14,357 nucleotides of DNA from Vitrella brassicaformis CCMP3155 (lineage: Eukaryota > Protista > Chromerida), in assembly GCA_001179505.1 (NCBI GenBank), contig CDMY01000867.1:1-14357 (forward strand), written 5' to 3'. Numbering within the stretch: position 1 is the first letter of the stretch; every line of letters begins with the position of its first letter. Below the pieces are notes generated by a model. The model saw nothing but the letters and a program-made list of their open reading frames with translations. It made no database searches and was not told the DNA's origin. The position numbers and the translations under genes were made by a program. Of the stretch, positions 773 through 12,504 are shown piece by piece.

Positions 773-3084
773 CTACACCATCGCCAATGCGCCCAGCACA
801 TGGGCGTCATTATTGATGACGTTGTGGCGGAGGGTCACGCCGATGCCGTATCGGGACGCCTCCAGCCGCACTGCCCGAGCGATCACCTCGCACACACCCA
901 TGTGCTGCTGCGGCTGGGCGGCGCCGCCTACGGCGAAGCATCGCAGCGCAGCGACGCCGGGCCCCCCCACCACACGAACATTGCCGTGCCTCTGCGGCCG
1001 CTCCTGGCTGCCCTCCTGCTGCTGCTGCGGCACCGGCTGGCAGATCACACGCGCTGCGGCCGTGACGTACTGGCGGACGGCGTGGTTGATTTGTGTGCCG
1101 ATGGGCTCATCGCCGATGGGGNNNNNNNNNNNNNNNNNNNNNNNNNNNNNNNNNNNNNNNNNNNNNNNNNNNNNNNNNNNNNNNNNNNNNNNNNNNNNNN
1201 NNNNNNNNNNNNNNNNNNNNNNNNNNNNNNNNNNNNNNNNNNNNNNNNNNNNNNNNNNNNNNNNNNNNNNNNNNNNNNNNNNNNNNNNNNNNNNNNNNNN
1301 NNNNNNNNNNNNNNNNNNNNNNNNNNNNNNNNNNNNNNNNNNNNNNNNNNNNNNNNNNNNNNNNNNNNNNNNNNNNNNNNNNNNNNNNNNNNNNNNNNNN
1401 NNNNNNNNNNNNNNNNNNNNNGCCGATGGGCTCATCGCCGATGGGGATGGGGGGGGGGGGCGGGCTGTCGGTCTGGTTGGTGGGGGCGAGATAGCCGTTG
1501 ATGGCCGTCAGGACGTCAGGCGGCAGGGCGATGGTGCGGCTGCGGAGGGAGATCGGCTGGGTGAGGGACGCCATGAGGCTGCGTGATGGGCGGAGGGCCT
1601 TGTTGATGGCCTGCAGGGCCAGGCGGGGGATGGACTCGTTGAGGAAGGACGAGTATGCCGTAAGCAGCTTGGGTCTTCCACCCTGCTGTGTGAGCCCGGC
1701 AGTCACCACAGATGCGCCGTGCTCGAGCAGACCGACGAGGGCTTCGCTAGGACAGTAAAATCGGGCTGCCGCATCGGTGAGCGCCGTGTTGCCCTGGCCG
1801 TCGGGCGTGTTGATGTGTTGCGCCGCCCCATACCGATAGAGACGCTCGATCGTTGCAGAGGCGTTCGATGGGTCTGCAGCTCTTCCGTGGTACTCGTACG
1901 CGTGATGAGCTATAGAGAGGGGCCGCCTGCCGTCAGGCGGCAGGGTGGGAGTGAGCTGGACGGGTGTGTTGACGACATCCGGCCCCAGCTTCTCGGCGAA
2001 GTGGTCGATGAGCTGCTCCTGCAGCTTCTTGTCGCTCAGTGGCCTTGAGCTGAAGTGATGGATGGGCCGCCAGCCATCGTCGTCCTTCTCCGACAGCACC
2101 GTCAAGTTCCGCTCGCCGAGCATCTTGACCACACGCAGCTTGTCGGCCGAGCTCGACTCGCTGCGACACACCGCCGCCACCAGGCACTGTCCGGCAACTG
2201 AGGTGCCGTCTTGCGGCTCCAGCATGACATCCAGGACACCCCACTTGCCGGCCCGCGCGGCCGTGTGAAGTGCGCTGTCGCGGTCGCTGCGTCTGTTTGG
2301 TGGGACGTTGGGGGCGCCAGCGTCGAGCAGCACCCGCATCACGCCGACGGCCTCGGGCTCGTCCAGGTGCTCTGCGGCAAGTCGGGGCAGGCTCGTGTCG
2401 GCGCCGGCCGAAGTGGGCCACGCCCTGACGATCTGATTGCCCTCGGCGCCTCGGTGGATGAGGTCGCGGGCTGACCCCTCACTGATGACATTGCAGGCGA
2501 CGCCGATAGCCAGCTGCCTCGTCAGCTGGCTCGCGCCTCGGAAATCGATGACGACGTTGTTAGGGCTGAGATTCGGGGGGCCTGCCAACCAAGCAGTGGA
2601 GGGTCGCCAGATGCTCACTCGGTCAGGGAAGGTGAGGGGCTGGTCGGGCGGCACAGTGGCGCAGAGCGCTGGAGGAGGGGACGATCCCCAGACGAACGAC
2701 TCGGACGGCCCCTGATTGATCGACACACACATGCACCACAGCTGTTGTGTCTGCTCTGCCTCATTGGGGTGTGGTTGCCTCATCACTCACCGTCGGTGTG
2801 GAGCCCTCAGCTGGCTTCAGCGACACCCCATCCGTCTCGCCCTCCCACATCCCATATGTGTCCTTGAAGAAGACTAGATGAGGCGTGTCGTCCGCCATCA
2901 GCCGCCGCCCTCCTCCCTCTTCGCGGCGCTTGAGCTGTCCGTCGGCTCCGATGATGCCGTAGCTGTAGTTGCACCTCACTACGAAGTCGCTGCGACTGTA
3001 CACCCCTTCACGATCCTTCCTGCTTTCGGAAGGGAGGACCACAGACAGAGACCACCTCGGGCAAGTCGGTGACGGGGGACTCAT
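773..3084 (-). CDS. Ankyrin-repeat protein, 2 exons (3084-2791; 2711-773 after removing the false gap), ~635 aa
   Basis: ATG at 3084 in gtcgccATG context. Phase-0 intron 2790-2712 (GTGAGT...ATCAATCAG) joins ...EGSTPT|GPSES. Ankyrin-like motifs: DSALHTAARAGKWGVLDVMLE, GWRPIHHF, GRRPLSIAH, GNTALTDAAAR...LLEHGAS, VMRVLLDAGA. Stop TAG at 775-773. Exon 2 is 1939 nt; minus 300 N and a 25-nt duplicated flank it is 1614 nt, a whole number of codons. Confidence 0.85.
1122..1421. other. Assembly gap (300 N), probably spurious (flanks overlap by 25 nt)
   Basis: gccgatgggctcatcgccgatgggg is at 1097-1121 and again at 1422-1446; a G12 run at 1449-1460 lies next to it. Confidence 0.9.
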
Positions 3085-3743: not shown

Positions 3744-4365
3744 ATGGCTGAGCCTCGTTTTGGCAGTGTGTCCGATGGCGACGTGGACAGGATCTTCTGC
3801 CGCTTTGACCACGGCTCCAAGGGCGTGCTGACGCGCGCAGAGCTCAAGAGCGCCCTGCTGGCGGTGTTCGGCTTCCCATTCGTCAAGAGTGACATTCAGG
3901 TGGGTCGGCAGAAAGGGACGGAAGGACACAAACAAACAAGGCACGGACATGGCTGCTGGTGTGGTGCTGTGCTGTGCATCAGCACTTGTGGGAGGAGGGG
4001 CTTAGTCACCAGCGGCCGCCCTTCACGCCGCCAGGCCTCTCAAAAGAGGTCTTTAGAGCTATCGTACGTAAGCAACAACACTCTCTCACCGACGGATCAG
4101 GGAGAGTGTGTGTTGCACATGAGTGCAGGTGAGACGTCGGGAGCGGCTGATCTCATCGTTTGACCGGTCCTTCCGGGCCTTCTCTGCCCTCGACCGGCAC
4201 TCCCGCGGCTTCCTGCTGCTGGACGACATCGAGTGTGCGATGGGCGAGGTCTGCCCGGCCGTCAAGATCAGCGCGGCGGAGGTGTTTGCCGCCATGGACA
4301 GGGGGACGGCGGGGAGGGTGACCTTCACTGACTTCCGACTGTTCATCGGGGAGGGAGCCCTGTGA
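3744..4365 (+). CDS. EFCAB11: EF-hand calcium-binding domain protein, EFCAB11-like; exons 3744-3899, 3983-4063, 4129-4365; 157 aa
   Basis: Two phase-0 GT-AG introns give MAEPRFGSVSDGDVDRIFCRFDHGSKGVLTRAELKSALLAVFGFPFVKSDIQ|HLWEEG...GLSKEVFRAI|VRRRERLISSFDRSFRAFSALDRHSRGFLLLDDIECAMGEV...EVFAAMDRGTAGRVTFTDF. This lines up along its length with human EFCAB11 as I remember it (KGYLSREDFKTAVVMLFGY; GFLNIVRKK; RGFLTLEDF; GHVSFRDF). The symbol is by recalled similarity. Confidence 0.85.
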
Positions 4366-5839: not shown

Positions 5840-8800
5840 TCACTCACACACGTGTGAGTGGTTGGACGAGAGGGGCACCGAGAGGGCCTCGAGGTTGCGC
5901 CACTCGTGGTCGCTCGCCAGGTCGGTGCGCTCGTGCACAAAGGTCGACGCCGCCGCGCCCACCTTGCCGCTCAGCCCTCTCAAACCCTTCCTCAGCCGCC
6001 TCCCATACACACGCATCACCCCCCACACGCCCGCAACACCCACCACTGACAGCAGCACACACCCCCACACGACGAAAAAAGTCGAGAAAGACGGCGACTG
6101 GGAAGAAGACCCTCCTCCCAGATCGCCACCCAAACCCAAGTCAGCCTTGGCGCCCTGCGTCGACGTGAGCGGGTGTGAGGGCGGCATTGGCAGAGAGGAG
6201 GGGTGGTAGTCCTGCTCGCCATCTGTGGGGGCCGATGCCGCCACGGGGGCCCCCTCGTTGACCAGCATGAGGGAGGGGAGGGGCGTCAGGCGGTTGGGCG
6301 GCGACACGAGCGAGGAGCGGGGCGAGTGGTGGGCGTCGTGGTGGTGCGCGTGGTGGGTGAGCTTGTAGAGCATCTTGCCCGTCGCCTGGCCGGCCAGGAG
6401 CAGCGCTGCTGGGGAGGTTGCTGGGAGGTGGCGGACGAGCATCTGCATGTCCCTTGACACGTTGACGCCATCGATCGACACCATCAGCTGCACACACAGA
6501 TCACAGAAAGGGGACCACATCACATCATAGTTGGGTGTGGTGTATCTCTTGACCGCCTTAGCTCACCTTGTCGGTGCTCTCGTGCCTCTCGACCTTGATA
6601 CTGTCGATGCTGACGCCGTCCATGCGGGCCTCGAGGTCTCTGGCGAGTTTTGTGAGCTTGCTGGCGAAGCCCAGGGGCGCCTTCCTCAGGGCGGTGGTGT
6701 TGGTGATGCACTCCTTGACGATGAGCGGGATGTAAGTCTTGATGTCGTCGACGATTGCCATGACGCCCTCCCTGAAGGTGGTCTTGTTGAGGACCATCGC
6801 CCAGTCGTCCTCCAGCGCACCCACAAACGACTGGACCACACGGCCACACGCGACACAATACACCCATCCGTTCATTGACCCAAATCTCTCTCACCATGAC
6901 GGTGTCGATGCAAGAAGTGTCGTTGCCCTCCTTGCCGAAGACCACTGGCTGGTCCTTGCCCCTCCCCCCCAGAGCCGTCCACCGTGGGGGCAGCCCCTGC
7001 GCCACGCCAGCCAGGAAATAGGATGCGCGACGCAGTGCGTCAGGGGAGATAGCAGAGGGGCCCGGGGGGTGGGGGATGGCCACACCGATGAGGAGCTTGC
7101 CAAGGGCCTGCACAAGCAAGGGCAGACAAACAGACACTCTTGATTCTTGAAAGGTAGACGTGTGTGGTCGGCATGGTCGCTTCGCTGACTGACCATGCCG
7201 ACGTCTTCGCCGAGGCCCTCCCAGTCGTCATTGCCGTATGCGATGACGGCCTGGTTCATCTCGTGGAAGATGTCGCGCCCGTTGATCAGCAGGTCCTTGC
7301 CCACGTGCAGAGCAAACGACTGGACGCACAGCACAGCACAGAGATTTGAAGGGTGGGTAGCTCACTTTGTGTGGGTGTGGTTCTCTGTCTGTGTGTGGTG
7401 ATGGGATGGCTACGTGTGGGTTTGAGAGGGTGGCGAGTGCTTCTTCGATCTTCTCGAGGTCGTGCTCTCCCGCCTTGCAGTCGCGCAGACTCGGAAGGCT
7501 GAACGAACACAATGCATTCAGACGTGTGTGAGCGTGAAGCTTGGTGTGGGTGGTGGGGCTGCGTCTGTCCTCCGTGTGTGGTGCATGTATTACTTACAGC
7601 TTCTTGTCGAGCGCGTCGGCCAGCACCTGCACATGACATGCAAAAGACAGACAGATCAGAGAGATGCAAACAAAGGAGCGACATTCGAGCTTCTTTCTGT
7701 GTGTTGTGTGCTGGTTGGTTCACTGGCTGACTGACCTTGAGCCCGGCCTTGACGTCCGCCCTGTCCTTCTTGAGTATGAGGGCTATCGCGATGGCAATGT
7801 CCTCATCCAACTCGTTCGTGTCCTCTAAACACACACACACACGAAGAAAGGCATCCATGTGTTGTGCCAAGGGTACATGCCGGCCCTGCCGGCCCATGCA
7901 TGACGTCTCCCTCCCTCCCTGCCGTACTTATGCAGGCCCACAGCAGCGGGTAGTCGAGTCCGAACCCCTCCAGCAGCCCCTTGGCGAACAGCTGGATCTT
8001 CGCAGTGTTGTTGGGCACACTCACGTCGGGAAGCGCCTCTGCTACCGATGACAGCGGGCGGACCATGGAGCCCAACGCACGACTGCAGCAATCGAGAGCA
8101 GGAGATAAGATCGCTGCATCGTCAGTTTGTGTGAGTGTGCGCGCGCGTGGGTGGATGGATGGATGGATGGATGGGGGGGGGGNNNNNNNNNNNNNNNNNN
8201 NNNNNNNNNNNNNNNNNNNNNNNNNNNNNNNNNNNNNNNNNNNNNNNNNNNNNNNNNNNNNNNNNNNNNNNNNNNNNNNNNNNNNNNNNNNNNNNNNNNN
8301 NNNNNNNNNNNNNNNNNNNNNNNNNNNNNNNNNNNNNNNNNNNNNNNNNNNNNNNNNNNNNNNNNNNNNNNNNNNNNNNNNNNNNNNNNNNNNNNNNNNN
8401 NNNNNNNNNNNNNNNNNNNNNNNNNNNNNNNNNNNNNNNNNNNNNNNNNNNNNNNNNNNNNNNNNNNNNNNNNNNNNNNNNNCTGTGTATCTTTCGGCTT
8501 ACCCAGCGGCCTGATATCGTTGGTGTTTCCACTCGTCAATGAAGGTGTTGAGCGGCTCGAACATGGCAACCCCGTCAACAGACAGCCGCACACCTACACC
8601 GGCCCAAACCACACAGCAACCACACACATCGCATACATGGGCATCAAATCAATCAAGGGGATCCATCTCATCTGCAACCCCGCAATCACCTGGGACGTAT
8701 TCCATTTTTGCGGGGTTGGCCAGCCGTCTGGCGGCGTTGGCCATGTCAGCCCGGAGGGCGACAGGGGCAGTGGAGGGGAGGGCATCGGACAGAGCCGTCA

Positions 8801-9379
8801 GGACGTGCGACAAACCCAACAGACCTGCAAACCCGCGCCCACAATCGACGACCTTTCTCTGTTTCCTGCTCATTGCCCATCTGTCTGTCTGTCTGTCAGT
8901 GTGCGTGTGTACCGTGGGCCATTCCGGTGAAGGTCTTCTGCGTCACAGAAGACACAGCGCTGTCCACCTGCACAGACACACACACGCGCACCACACACAT
9001 AGATGCGTCACCCAGATGCCCACAGACAGGGAGGCGTTTGTGTCTGGCTCATGCATGCCTCAATACCATGTCAGCAGACAACCCCTCTAGCGAGTCGCTG
9101 CTCCACGCGCGGGCGTCAAAGTGCATCGGCAGGCCCGACGGCAGCAACGCCTCCGACAAACCTGTCACACAAACACACACACGCACACACACACACGCAC
9201 ACACAAGCAGTCTCTCCCCTGTCTGTGTGTCACTGATCAGGCCTCAGGAGACGTCGGTCATGTGTGTCATTCGCACCTTCCATGATGCCTCTGGCGACGT
9301 TCTCATGCCCTGTCTGCTCCGCAGCAGCGCCACAAGCGACCAGCAAGGCCACGACGAGCCCAAACAACCGGCGAAGCAT
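5840..9379 (-). CDS. Uncharacterised type-I membrane/surface protein with signal peptide and three tandem helical repeats. Exons 9379-9277, 9161-9067, 8967-8913, 8824-8690, 8593-8503, 8082-7928, 7824-7736, 7626-7598, 7498-7414, 7319-7194, 7107-6895, 6830-6567, 6487-5840; ~695 aa
   Basis: All 12 introns are GT-AG and phase-consistent; the exons sum to 2088 nt (696 codons). The N-terminus MLRRLFGLVVALLVACGAAA is signal-peptide-like. Repeat ends align: GVRLSVDGVAMF..YQAAGRALG / GKDLLINGRDIF..WEGLGEDVG / KLMVSIDGVNVS..LAGQATG. TM segment FFVVWGCVLLSVVGVAGVWGVM is followed by RVYGRRLRK. The exact C-terminus is less certain (possible donors at 5878 and ~5847). Confidence 0.85.
8153..8182 (+). repeat. 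(GGAT)5 plus G10 run bordering gap 2
   Basis: Direct reading; intronic in the minus-strand gene. Confidence 0.9.
8183..8482. other. Assembly gap (300 N) inside intron 8502-8083 of the repeat-protein gene
   Basis: The phase-2 donor at 8502 (GG|GTAAGC) and phase-2 acceptor at 8083 (CTGCAG|T) join in frame across it. The length equals gap 1, so it is probably a placeholder size. Confidence 0.85.
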
Positions 9380-9788: not shown

Positions 9789-12504
9789 ATGTGGTTACCC
9801 TTTAAGGCCCTGAATGAGTACATCGCCGAGAGCCGCGTCGGGCGGTACTTCAAGCTCAAGGAGAGGGGGTCCGATGTGGCGACCGAATTGAGAGGCTCAC
9901 TTGCTACCTTCATGACCATGGTGAGGCGAAAGCCATCCCATCCGCCGTGTGTTGAGGGCAGGTGTTTGATGGATGGATGGATGGATGGATGACTGCAGGC
10001 TTACATCCTGGCTGTCAACGCCAGTATCGTTGCCCTCTCTGGTGGTCCCTGCGGCGTCCCGCCCTTCATTCGGCCCGACGAGAACGTCGACTTTGCAGAG
10101 TGTACGCCACCCACACGAGGCATTAGTTCATTCAAACCATCCTTCACACGTGTGTCTGGGTCAACCAAATAGGCGTGTGTGTGTGTGTGTGTGTGTGTGT
10201 CGTTCAGGGGAGAAGTGCAATGTGCAGGTGCGGCGCGACCTGGTGGTGGCGACGGCTGCGTCGTCGGCTGTGGCCTGCTTCCTCATGGGAGCCTTCGCCA
10301 ACATGCCCCTCGCACTCGCGCCTGGCATGGGCATCAACGCGTACTTCACATTCAACGTGGTGTGGGGCGGGATCCCTTATGAGACCGCCCTGGCGGCCGT
10401 CTTCATTGAGGGCATCATCTTCGTCCTGCTGGCCGTCACTGGCGGACGGGCATTTATCGCCAGATGCATCCCGGAGTGCATCAAATTCGCGACAGGTGAG
10501 CCGATAAATAAGGACGAACCAACACACACACACACACACACAAAGGCGGATGTCGGTGTGTGTGGTGTGTGCAGCCGGCGGCATCGGTCTGTTCCTTGCC
10601 CACATCGGGCTGCAAAGCTCCCAAGGTGAGCCGTTGGATGAGCCACGGGCATGGGTGGGTGCCTGTGGATTGTGTGTGTGTGTCTGTCTGTGGTGTGCAG
10701 GTATCGGTCTTGTGACGGGCAACTCGGCCACCCTGGTGACAGCCGGCGGCTGTCCGCCCGAGTACAGAGACGAAGATCCTGATTCTGACTGGTGAGAGGA
10801 GGGGGGCGGGGGGTGATTGGGGGCAGCACACACACACAAACACACGCACAGACGCACACACGCTCCTCACACATACTGCGTCAGGTATCAGTGCGAGGAC
10901 GCGGGCAGGGGTCTGTCGCTCACCATGTGGTTCGGCATCATCGCACTCCTCCTCATGGCCTTTTTGTAAGCCAACCAGAGAACTACCCAGACAGAAGGAG
11001 ACCGACTCTGCTGTCGATCTGTGTTCGCCTCTCGCAGGCTCATGAAGAAGTTCAAGGGTGCCGTCATCACTGGTGAATAGTGGATGCAGCTTGGGTAGTA
11101 AAGAGCTCTCCACATCTAGGTGTGCCTCTCGTGTGTCTCTTTGAGTGTCGTAGGCATCGCGCTCGTCACCTTTATCAGCTGGATCCCCGGCACAGCCGTC
11201 TCCTACTTCGAAGAGAGCGTCTCACCAGGCGCAGAGGTACACACACACACACACACACACACACGACACAGCCATCGGCCCCGTGTGTGTGACCGTGTTG
11301 GCAGGAACGTTACGAGTACTTCAGCAAGGGTGTCGACCCCCCCTCCCTCTCCCTAACGGGCCTAGCCCTGGACTTCTCGACATTCGCCGATGGCTCCGTG
11401 TGGAACGCCCTCATCACCTTCCTCTACATAGATCTGCTCGACACCACCGGCACGCTCTACTCCATGGCATCCTTCGCGGGGCTCATGAATGAGAAGTGAG
11501 ATGTGATCACACCGACCTCACCCAATGAGACGGCGAGGCACTGCTGTCTGTTGTCTGTCTCCTGATTGGCTGGTCGTGCAGCGGAAGCTTTGAGGGCGAG
11601 GCCCGCGCGTACATGGTGGACGGCATGGCGACGGTGGTGGGCTCCTTGATGGGGACATCGCCCGTCACCACATTCGTCGAGTCGGGAGCCGGGATTGAGG
11701 AGGGCGCCAAGACGGTACACACTTGGGAAATTCGGCACTCTCTCGGCGTGTGTATGTGTGTGTTTGGCATCATCCGTGTGTGTGTTTAGGGTCTGGCGGC
11801 AGTCTTCTGCTCGTTTTATTTCTTTCTCGCTTTGTTCTTCGCGCCGATCCTGGCGTCGGTTCCGCCATGGGCGACCGGGCCGGCACTCATCCTGGTGGGC
11901 AGCATGATGATCAAGAACCTCGTGCACATCAGATGGGACAACGTCGGAGAGGTCAGCAACACACACACACACACACGTGTCCATGGCTCCATCTGTGTGT
12001 GGGGGGGCTGATGGATGGATGGATGGATCAGGCCGTTCCTGCCTTCCTGACGGTGGCGTTGATGCCGCTGACCTACTCCATCGCCTACGGTCTGCTGGCC
12101 GGTCTCGGCGCCTTTGTGATCCTCAACCTGCCCGACCTCATCTGGGACCTCATCCAGGGCCGCGGCTTCCAGAGGCTGGTACGCTCGAGAGACGCACACA
12201 CAATGCTCATTCGCCGACATGTCTGCCAGTGACCGTGTGTGTGGTCTGTTGGTGGTGTGTGTGTGCAGAGGCGCTCCAAGAATGTGTCGGCGAAGGAGGC
12301 TGACTCCAAGACCTCACGAGATGACGCAACCGACTTCGACAAAGTCAGTTGGAAAAGAGGAACCAAGGAGGAGAGAGAGACCTGACTGTCGTCGTGTGTG
12401 TGTGTGTGTGTGTGCAGGTGGAGGAGCTTCCTTCCACGCAGCCCGTGACGCCCGCCAAGGGTCAGCTGGCGACCGGCCAAGACAACGACTTGCTCAAAGT
12501 CTGA
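9789..12504 (+). CDS. azgA: AzgA/AZG-family (NCS2 superfamily) adenine/guanine/hypoxanthine permease. Exons 9789-9920, 9999-10101, 10208-10495, 10575-10625, 10701-10791, 10885-10965, 11038-11072, 11154-11236, 11305-11495, 11582-11714, 11790-11951, 12032-12178, 12269-12343, 12418-12504; 552 aa
   Basis: 13 phase-consistent GT-AG introns; 1659 nt. Family motifs: [130 protein letters not shown]. Confidence 0.95.
9971..9990 (+). repeat. (GGAT)5 intronic microsatellite
   Basis: Direct reading; just upstream of the acceptor at 9998. Confidence 0.9.
10175..10200 (+). repeat. (GT)13 intronic microsatellite in place of a polypyrimidine tract
   Basis: Direct reading; ends 7 nt before the exon start at 10208. 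Confidence 0.95.
11239..11264 (+). repeat. (AC)13 intronic microsatellite directly after the donor GT
   Basis: Direct reading. Confidence 0.95.

Follow-up and report, generated by a model that had tools for sequence, protein, structure and literature searches.

The locus at positions 5840 to 9379 of contig CDMY01000867.1 (minus strand) from the chromerid Vitrella brassicaformis CCMP3155 (assembly GCA_001179505.1) raises three related questions: whether the coding sequence on either side of an assembly gap belongs to a single gene, whether the encoded protein is built from repeated copies of one domain, and what that domain might be and do. A first-pass annotation of the sequence had proposed a spliced gene for a cell-surface protein with three tandem copies of an unnamed helical domain, and we examine this proposal through reconstruction of the gene, collection of relatives of the domain, and searches for known families and folds. 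Throughout, the window denotes the whole stretch of DNA analysed (14,357 nucleotides, nt), and coordinates are those of the window; all features of the gene lie on its minus strand. We find that the locus is one nuclear V. brassicaformis gene, with the exon-intron structure set out below, and that its product includes two copies, and probably a degenerate third, of a domain that recurs in a large number of unannotated protist proteins. This is a well-supported, uncurated domain family, and as a finding we regard it as promising but not surprising.

One gene across an assembly gap

Reconstruction of the minus-strand frame from the raw sequence resolved the coding region (5840-9379) into 13 exons and 12 introns, all of the latter beginning with GT and ending with AG. 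The joined frame is open over 2088 nt and 695 codons, from an ATG at 9379 to a stop at 5840-5842, with exons 1-5 at 9379-9277, 9161-9067, 8967-8913, 8824-8690 and 8593-8503, exons 6-10 at 8082-7928, 7824-7736, 7626-7598, 7498-7414 and 7319-7194, and exons 11-13 at 7107-6895, 6830-6567 and 6487-5840. Introns are short, 11 of the 12 measuring 64-115 nt, and the remaining one, intron 5 (8083-8502), encloses the assembly gap, a run of N at 8183-8482. Exon junctions 3/4 to 11/12 are colinear with members of the domain family described below. The single 13-exon gene that the first-pass annotation had read through the gap is therefore upheld by GT-AG introns, an open frame and an indel-free alignment of the first domain unit. 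The interval assigned to it (6360-9379) correctly took in the start and the three units, but omitted the last 173 codons, which encode a stalk, a transmembrane helix and a tail, the coding sequence running to 5840.

Both the frame and the domain alignment run across the join between exons 5 and 6. The exon 5 donor (GTAAGC, intron start at 8502) stands 20 nt ahead of the gap and the exon 6 acceptor (CAG, intron end at 8083) 100 nt past it, and the 120 nt of intron 5 already read correspond to a normal intron size for this gene. The phases at the two sites fit, with GG from exon 5 and T from exon 6 forming a glycine codon, and this glycine and the glycine four residues on constitute the most conserved glycine pair in the last helix of the domain. 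Alignment of unit 1 with the family profile, and with single relatives by BLAST, shows no indel at the junction, and the invariant Gly-to-Gly spacing of 23 residues is kept in unit 1, matching the family. Given the phase match, the indel-free alignment, the preserved spacing and the length of intron already read, we conclude that the gap is intronic and probably short, and the domain alignment leaves no room for a hidden exon within it.

These same features bear on an alternative in which the scaffold fuses two genes at the gap, one encoding a short one-domain secreted protein (exons 1-5) and the other a separate two-domain membrane protein that begins beyond the gap. The gap length is merely estimated and scaffolding errors do happen, but two unrelated genes would have to meet with compatible donor and acceptor phases and with the first 10 residues of exon 6 completing unit 1 without an indel. 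In addition, the 100 nt after the gap contain no start codon with a signal peptide before exon 6, and the portion of intron 5 already read is of normal intron length; we consider such a fusion very improbable. A (GGAT)n microsatellite and poly-G run (8150-8182) lies directly at the gap edge and is a likely cause of the assembly break. CA/GT-rich tracts are also common across the introns of this 13-exon gene.

Domain copies and an uncurated family

Exon 10 alone retrieved P0001, a protein of 124 amino acids (aa) from a public assembly, at 51% identity, and P0001 used as a query returned 31 unannotated proteins. A profile of 15 of these proteins, searched against 1.84 billion cluster representatives, identified 2270 representatives at E<=1e-3, 1187 at <=1e-10 and 284 at <=1e-30. 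The 204 relatives fetched carry from one to nine tandem copies per protein, and a signal-like hydrophobic core was found in 73 of the 104 with a complete N-terminus. Named members include the ciliates Protocruzia adherens (nine copies) and Blepharisma stoltei, the latter represented in UniProt by an 'Uncharacterized protein', as well as Colpodella angusta and, beyond the alveolates, an undescribed heterolobosean and the jakobid Stygiella incarcerata. Judged from these members and Vitrella, the family spans Alveolata and Discoba and is not an alveolate invention, contrary to what the first-pass annotation had supposed.

Members of the family share an invariant cysteine pair approximately 47 residues apart and a strongly conserved signature, S-P-x-S-F-A-Y-H-V-G-K-D-L-x-V-N-G-x-D-I. 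The GKDLLING motif, which the first-pass annotation had attributed to uncharacterised secreted proteins of ciliates and dinoflagellates, does recur in such proteins from ciliates (Protocruzia, Blepharisma and clusters of the Atlas); no dinoflagellate member was found among the named sources. Within the Vitrella protein the signature is kept only by copy 2.

For the delineation of individual copies, a local profile was built from 269 complete domain units cut from 176 relatives, and the spliced model was scored with it. Comparison with such locally built family profiles and hydropathy analysis were the uses made of the joined protein, while the external searches used single exons or relatives. 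Copy 2 (aa 185-330, exons 6-11; 7081-8009) is canonical: it matches the profile with 135.6 bits (6.3e-44; aa 185-329, profile positions 5-150), is identical at 11 of 11 highly conserved columns, reaches 45-46% identity with the best family units (45% over 148 columns), and possesses both cysteines (C210/C258) and the complete signature motif, the latter in exon 10 (7194-7319). Copy 1 (aa 27-170, exons 1-6; 8052-9301) is divergent and full-length, matching the profile with 42.1 bits (3.7e-15) over aa 64-168 (envelope 20-176), aligning end to end with single family units at approximately 30% identity over 144 columns (BLAST), and matching 106 family proteins at E<1e-3. It retains the N- and C-terminal GxxxG, the proline and the xDG motif; of the signature, only P, D-G and the spacing are kept, and both cysteines have been replaced, having been lost together. 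On the basis of these matches, copies 1 and 2 belong to the family.

The third unit (aa 349-525, exons 11-13; 6353-7026) is a probable degenerate copy in which cysteines C387 and C433 stand at the family spacing and the signature motif has been lost. Within the spliced model the family profile gives it only -0.4 bits (independent E-value 0.046) over aa 383-435, hmmalign places its Cys-to-Cys core only, and pairwise Smith-Waterman comparison with unit 1 or unit 2 is not significant, all of which would be expected if the protein held just two true copies and aa 349-525 were an unrelated helical spacer with a chance cysteine spacing. Chance is a less comfortable explanation, however, for the score of unit 3 taken alone (4.0 bits), which was reached by just 2 of 2000 composition-matched shuffles, or for the colinear order of its two aligned pieces (profile positions 28-82 and 136-149), in which both cysteines and the central glycine of the family fall exactly into register. 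Unit 3 also matches one family unit (P0049) at the equivalent position, both by phmmer (E 6.6e-4 in a 176-protein database) and by BLAST (E 0.002), and inspection by eye finds all of the family glycine anchors present in the correct order, with insertions of approximately 15 residues after the first helix and approximately 19 before the fifth.

A precedent for decay within an array is offered by the Colpodella angusta protein P0048 (EukProt), in which two degenerate copies (30 and 40 bits) are followed by three canonical ones (112-138 bits), five in all, and which, as judged from these scores, shows the same mixture of decayed and intact copies as the Vitrella gene; no hydrophobic membrane stretch was found in P0048. 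We consider it likely that unit 3 is a degenerate homologous copy, and a protein of only two true copies rather improbable. The three tandem copies originally proposed for this protein may accordingly be divided into two that are well matched by the profile and a third that is only marginal.

Comparisons made within the protein are less informative. Units 1 and 2 align with z=3.4 by pairwise Smith-Waterman, a score reached by 3 of 500 shuffles, and exons 10 and 12 matched only themselves in a six-frame search of the organism's own genome, no copy being recovered with an exon of another. We accept the repeat because the profile of the relatives is decisive, the internal evidence being weak alone. 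The four anchor motifs on which the first-pass annotation had built its repeats fall on the near-invariant glycines of the family. The GxxxG pairs are profile-aligned at both the N- and C-terminus in copy 2 and at the C-terminus in copy 1, the N-terminal GxxxG of copy 1 is aligned by BLAST, and in copy 3 the motif is placed by eye together with one piece of -1.6 bits. Intron positions were compared among the three copies by eye and none coincide in both position and phase; the introns therefore neither support nor oppose an origin by duplication.

Two further observations concern the family more broadly. Among relatives P0001-P0204, hydrophobic C-terminal tripeptides are frequent (FLY 11, FLQ 8, also FLF, FLN and FLH), with the pattern hydrophobic-hydrophobic-[QHYFN] at 38 of 122 complete C-termini, and in these proteins the tripeptide may represent a sorting signal; the Vitrella protein has a transmembrane helix and a tail instead. 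A second Vitrella locus (L005:3494-6565, minus strand; G000:C317, approximately 37493-40564) encodes a 1024-aa open frame with one divergent domain copy, in which profile positions 87-150 match aa 640-708 of the frame at 22.9 bits, preceded approximately 150 aa upstream by a GxxxG start; the frame has no Pfam match.

Fold of the domain and searches for known relatives

The fold was modelled on relative P0021 with AlphaFold2, using a 40-sequence alignment of single-domain members. The resulting model has six helices, with a predicted local distance difference test (pLDDT) score of 77.9 and a predicted template modelling score (pTM) of 0.65, while the model that the Atlas provides for P0021 reaches a pTM of 0.77; an AlphaFold2 run on only 15 sequences had yielded a weak model (pLDDT 65), with which Foldseek returned no match. 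The domain is thus predicted to be all-alpha, with six helices in approximately 150 aa. The GxxxG motif occurs in the first and last helices of the model, in keeping with the 'GxxxG helices' of the first-pass annotation, and the 'amphipathic helix' described there corresponds to helix 3, which carries a near-invariant glycine. The LxI[ND]G motif, which had been described as 'beta-hairpin-like', instead falls midway along the fifth helix, a long one that also bears the signature motif. In the model the conserved cysteines immediately precede helix 2 and immediately follow helix 3, and could form a disulfide that staples the open end of the helix 2/3 hairpin. Furthermore, the conserved polar residues of helix 5 (Tyr, His, Lys, Asp and, further on, Glu) suggest a specific site, and in the Vitrella protein they are kept only in unit 2.

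The first-pass annotation had called the domain unnamed. Scans of the exons and of 32 relatives (15 with a single domain, 17 with several) brought no Pfam-A model to its threshold, and the ten larger Vitrella exons gave no Pfam-A match. PDB sequences were also searched, and neither P0001 nor the family profiles A1 and A2 returned anything but noise. Structural comparison gave a similar picture, with a best E of 0.4 in Foldseek for the better model (threshold E<=1e-3), a prenyltransferase as the top match of a VIA-wide search, at Z 6.1 over 94 residues (below the tool's stated noise for helical proteins), and a template modelling score of at most 0.44 in the Atlas structure search. The named clusters of the Atlas yielded nothing, and its feature search recovered only unnamed eukaryotic clusters, most commonly in ciliates. 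Literature searches found no paper containing the signature motif, and nothing relevant on cathepsin B, ciliates, N-terminal extensions and tandem repeats. Within the Pfam, PDB, Foldseek, VIA and Atlas searches, the family has no curated or solved relative, by sequence or by fold, and its description as unnamed holds.

Several candidate families were considered and rejected. HsbA (PF12296) matched 3 of the 15 members, with a best E of 7.9e-4, and also P0035, at 14-18 bits compared to a gathering threshold of 33.5 bits. PMEI (PF04043) matched 2 of the 15 members and P0107 at 25.1 bits at best, compared to a threshold of 29 bits, with no match to an exon. Saposin (SapA/SapB) was represented by no Pfam match in any scan and by no hit in the fold searches, and the family has two cysteines per 150-aa unit. 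Matches in multi-copy relatives to KH_DUF2096_C, TRAPP, Colicin-DNase and others were sums of weak matches, with zero stretches passing on their own. Similarly, the names given by source databases to P0033, P0035, P0063 and P0203 (translin family, YecA, exonuclease VII small subunit and YehR lipoprotein) are mutually inconsistent and probably arose in the same way, as artefacts from adding up weak matches to helical families.

Topology and putative function

Assignments of the signal peptide and membrane helix are based on hydropathy and the positive-inside rule. The protein begins with a signal-peptide-like N-terminus (aa 1-20; 9320-9379) that passes from basic residues through a hydrophobic core to small residues (Kyte-Doolittle 19-residue mean 1.9). 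The three helical units follow in tandem, and are succeeded by a 90-residue low-complexity stalk rich in His, Pro, Ser and Gly (aa 526-615; 6083-6352), to which no Pfam model matches, a single transmembrane helix (aa 616-638; 6014-6082) with hydropathy up to 2.28 and an Arg/Lys cluster after it (positive inside), and a cytoplasmic tail of 57 aa (aa 639-695; 5843-6013). Five sequons (NNT, NDT, NKT, NTT and NVS) are present, all within the ectodomain, and cysteine pairs are confined to units 2 and 3. With these topology elements the protein is, on the evidence of its translated sequence, a type I membrane glycoprotein; the signal peptide, single membrane helix and five sequons named in the first-pass annotation are all borne out. 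Hydrophobic stretches are also found in two relatives, in P0042 (a membrane-anchored relative) from residue 457 of 513, near the C-terminus as in the Vitrella protein, and in P0170 at residue 201 of 303, two-thirds along its length.

Indications of function come from domain fusions in relatives. Among ten relatives scanned, three (P0041, P0047 and P0106) carry a C-terminal Peptidase_C1 domain (cathepsin-B-type, papain family; E approximately 1e-55) and one (P0040) an ML lipid-recognition domain (4e-20). A further seven (P0188-P0194) have a precomputed Peptidase_C1 match, a number biased by the search having been seeded from such a fusion. Taken together, production through the secretory pathway, the frequent presence of one putative disulfide, the arrangement in arrays and the lysosomal-type partners point to a luminal or extracellular binding module. 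The fusions indicate the endolysosomal lumen no less than the cell-surface, receptor-like placement proposed in the first-pass annotation.

The explanation that we consider likely overall is that the Vitrella protein is a tethered array of an uncurated six-helix domain. Its ectodomain would represent a tandem array of the approximately 150-aa all-alpha domain, in which copy 2, as the canonical copy, is probably the working unit, while copies 1 (divergent and cysteine-less) and 3 (degenerate) probably serve as spacers or scaffolds. Relatives are mostly soluble, secreted proteins distributed across phylogenetically distant protists. More tentatively, the domain would act as a binding module, either at the cell surface or in the endolysosomal or secretory lumen, and Vitrella would have a membrane-tethered version of it, with the stalk holding the array above the membrane.

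The repeated fusion of the domain directly N-terminal to cathepsin-B-type catalytic domains might also be taken to indicate that it regulates, chaperones or inhibits papain-type cysteine peptidases in the manner of a helical prodomain, instead of binding a lipid or small ligand, in which case the Vitrella protein would tether or control a luminal cathepsin. The weak, sub-threshold likeness of some members to the helical inhibitor family PMEI would be in keeping with such a role. Most of the family members fetched are without a peptidase domain, however, and the relative fused to an ML domain has lipid recognition in place of peptidase activity as its partner function. Moreover, no Pfam scan gave any likeness to a cathepsin propeptide family, and the cathepsin fusions were enriched in our sample by searching from one of them. 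Peptidase regulation is in our assessment an unlikely role for the domain.

If the domain is a binding module, its ligand would most plausibly be hydrophobic or a lipid, a proposal that we make tentatively. The nearest functional analogies would be prosaposin and the polyprotein lipid binders of nematodes, which were relatives by no test made. Prosaposin and other SAPLIP proteins resemble the family, by analogy and not by tested homology, in comprising tandem small all-helical units that are stapled by disulfides and pass through the secretory pathway. Saposins are lysosomal and bind lipids, and saposin-like units are also found attached to lysosomal or vacuolar peptidases; however, a saposin unit has approximately 80 aa and six cysteines, compared to approximately 150 aa, six helices and two cysteines for the domain described here. 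The ABA-1-type polyprotein allergens or antigens of nematodes are secreted, lipid-binding tandem helical units of approximately 130-150 aa. No sequence or fold match links them to the family, and the inter-unit linkers of the latter, which contain no evident basic cleavage sites, give no indication of processing into single units.

Two of the rejected Pfam families also offer points of comparison. The fungal HsbA/Mp1p type (PF12296), the most frequent weak Pfam match, is likewise secreted and built as a helical bundle, with hydrophobic surfaces or lipids as its binding partners, but its matches cover only approximately 55 residues, include no Vitrella exon and were not recovered by fold searches. 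PMEI (PF04043), the plant inhibitor of invertase and pectin methylesterase, is similarly a secreted, disulfide-stabilised helical bundle; it differs in its cysteine pattern, having four cysteines in two disulfides.

Several points weigh against the tethered-array explanation. The proposed function is derived from domain fusions in other organisms and from analogy, and the sub-threshold matches to HsbA and PMEI vary from member to member without consistency. The named relatives belong to phagotrophs, whereas Vitrella is a phototroph, and the role of the protein in Vitrella may therefore differ. Its cytoplasmic tail (aa 639-695) contains no recognised motif, and no sorting motif was seen in it. 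At the level of the protein, copy 3 is near noise level and its C-terminal half is aligned only by eye. At the level of the gene, the exon 1/2, 2/3 and 12/13 joins are supported mainly by GT-AG sites and frame, the first two being additionally spanned by the 30%-identity BLAST alignment.

A more far-reaching interpretation, which we regard as doubtful, would see in the family a new and ancient eukaryotic class of endolysosomal or secreted helical binding modules, similar to saposin and NPC2 in function, unrelated to them in sequence and fold, and present in thousands of proteins across Alveolata and Discoba. The tethered form in Vitrella could then be a receptor or a membrane-proximal presenter of ligands.

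Elsewhere in the window, a xanthine/uracil permease exon (PF00860, 4.2e-10) at 9973-10626 (plus strand), probably extending to approximately 12300, marks an unrelated neighbouring gene on the opposite strand. A long open frame at 1425-2786 (minus strand) has weak ankyrin repeats (Ank_4 at 22.3 bits, just under threshold) and runs into a second gap at 1122-1421, and an open frame at 3744-4160 (plus strand) has a weak EF-hand match at 17.5 bits, below threshold.

For the Vitrella genome, this work establishes a gene model that bridges an assembly gap. More generally, it brings to attention a domain that occurs in 2270 sequence clusters or more and for which no curated family model, solved structure or paper was found. 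Through its fusions with cathepsin B and NPC2-like ML domains, the family is a candidate for an unstudied component of the digestive or lysosomal biology of protists. Finally, no free-living organisms are more closely related to the apicomplexan parasites than chromerids and colpodellids, and a model of the family would allow its retention or loss in the parasites to be tested.

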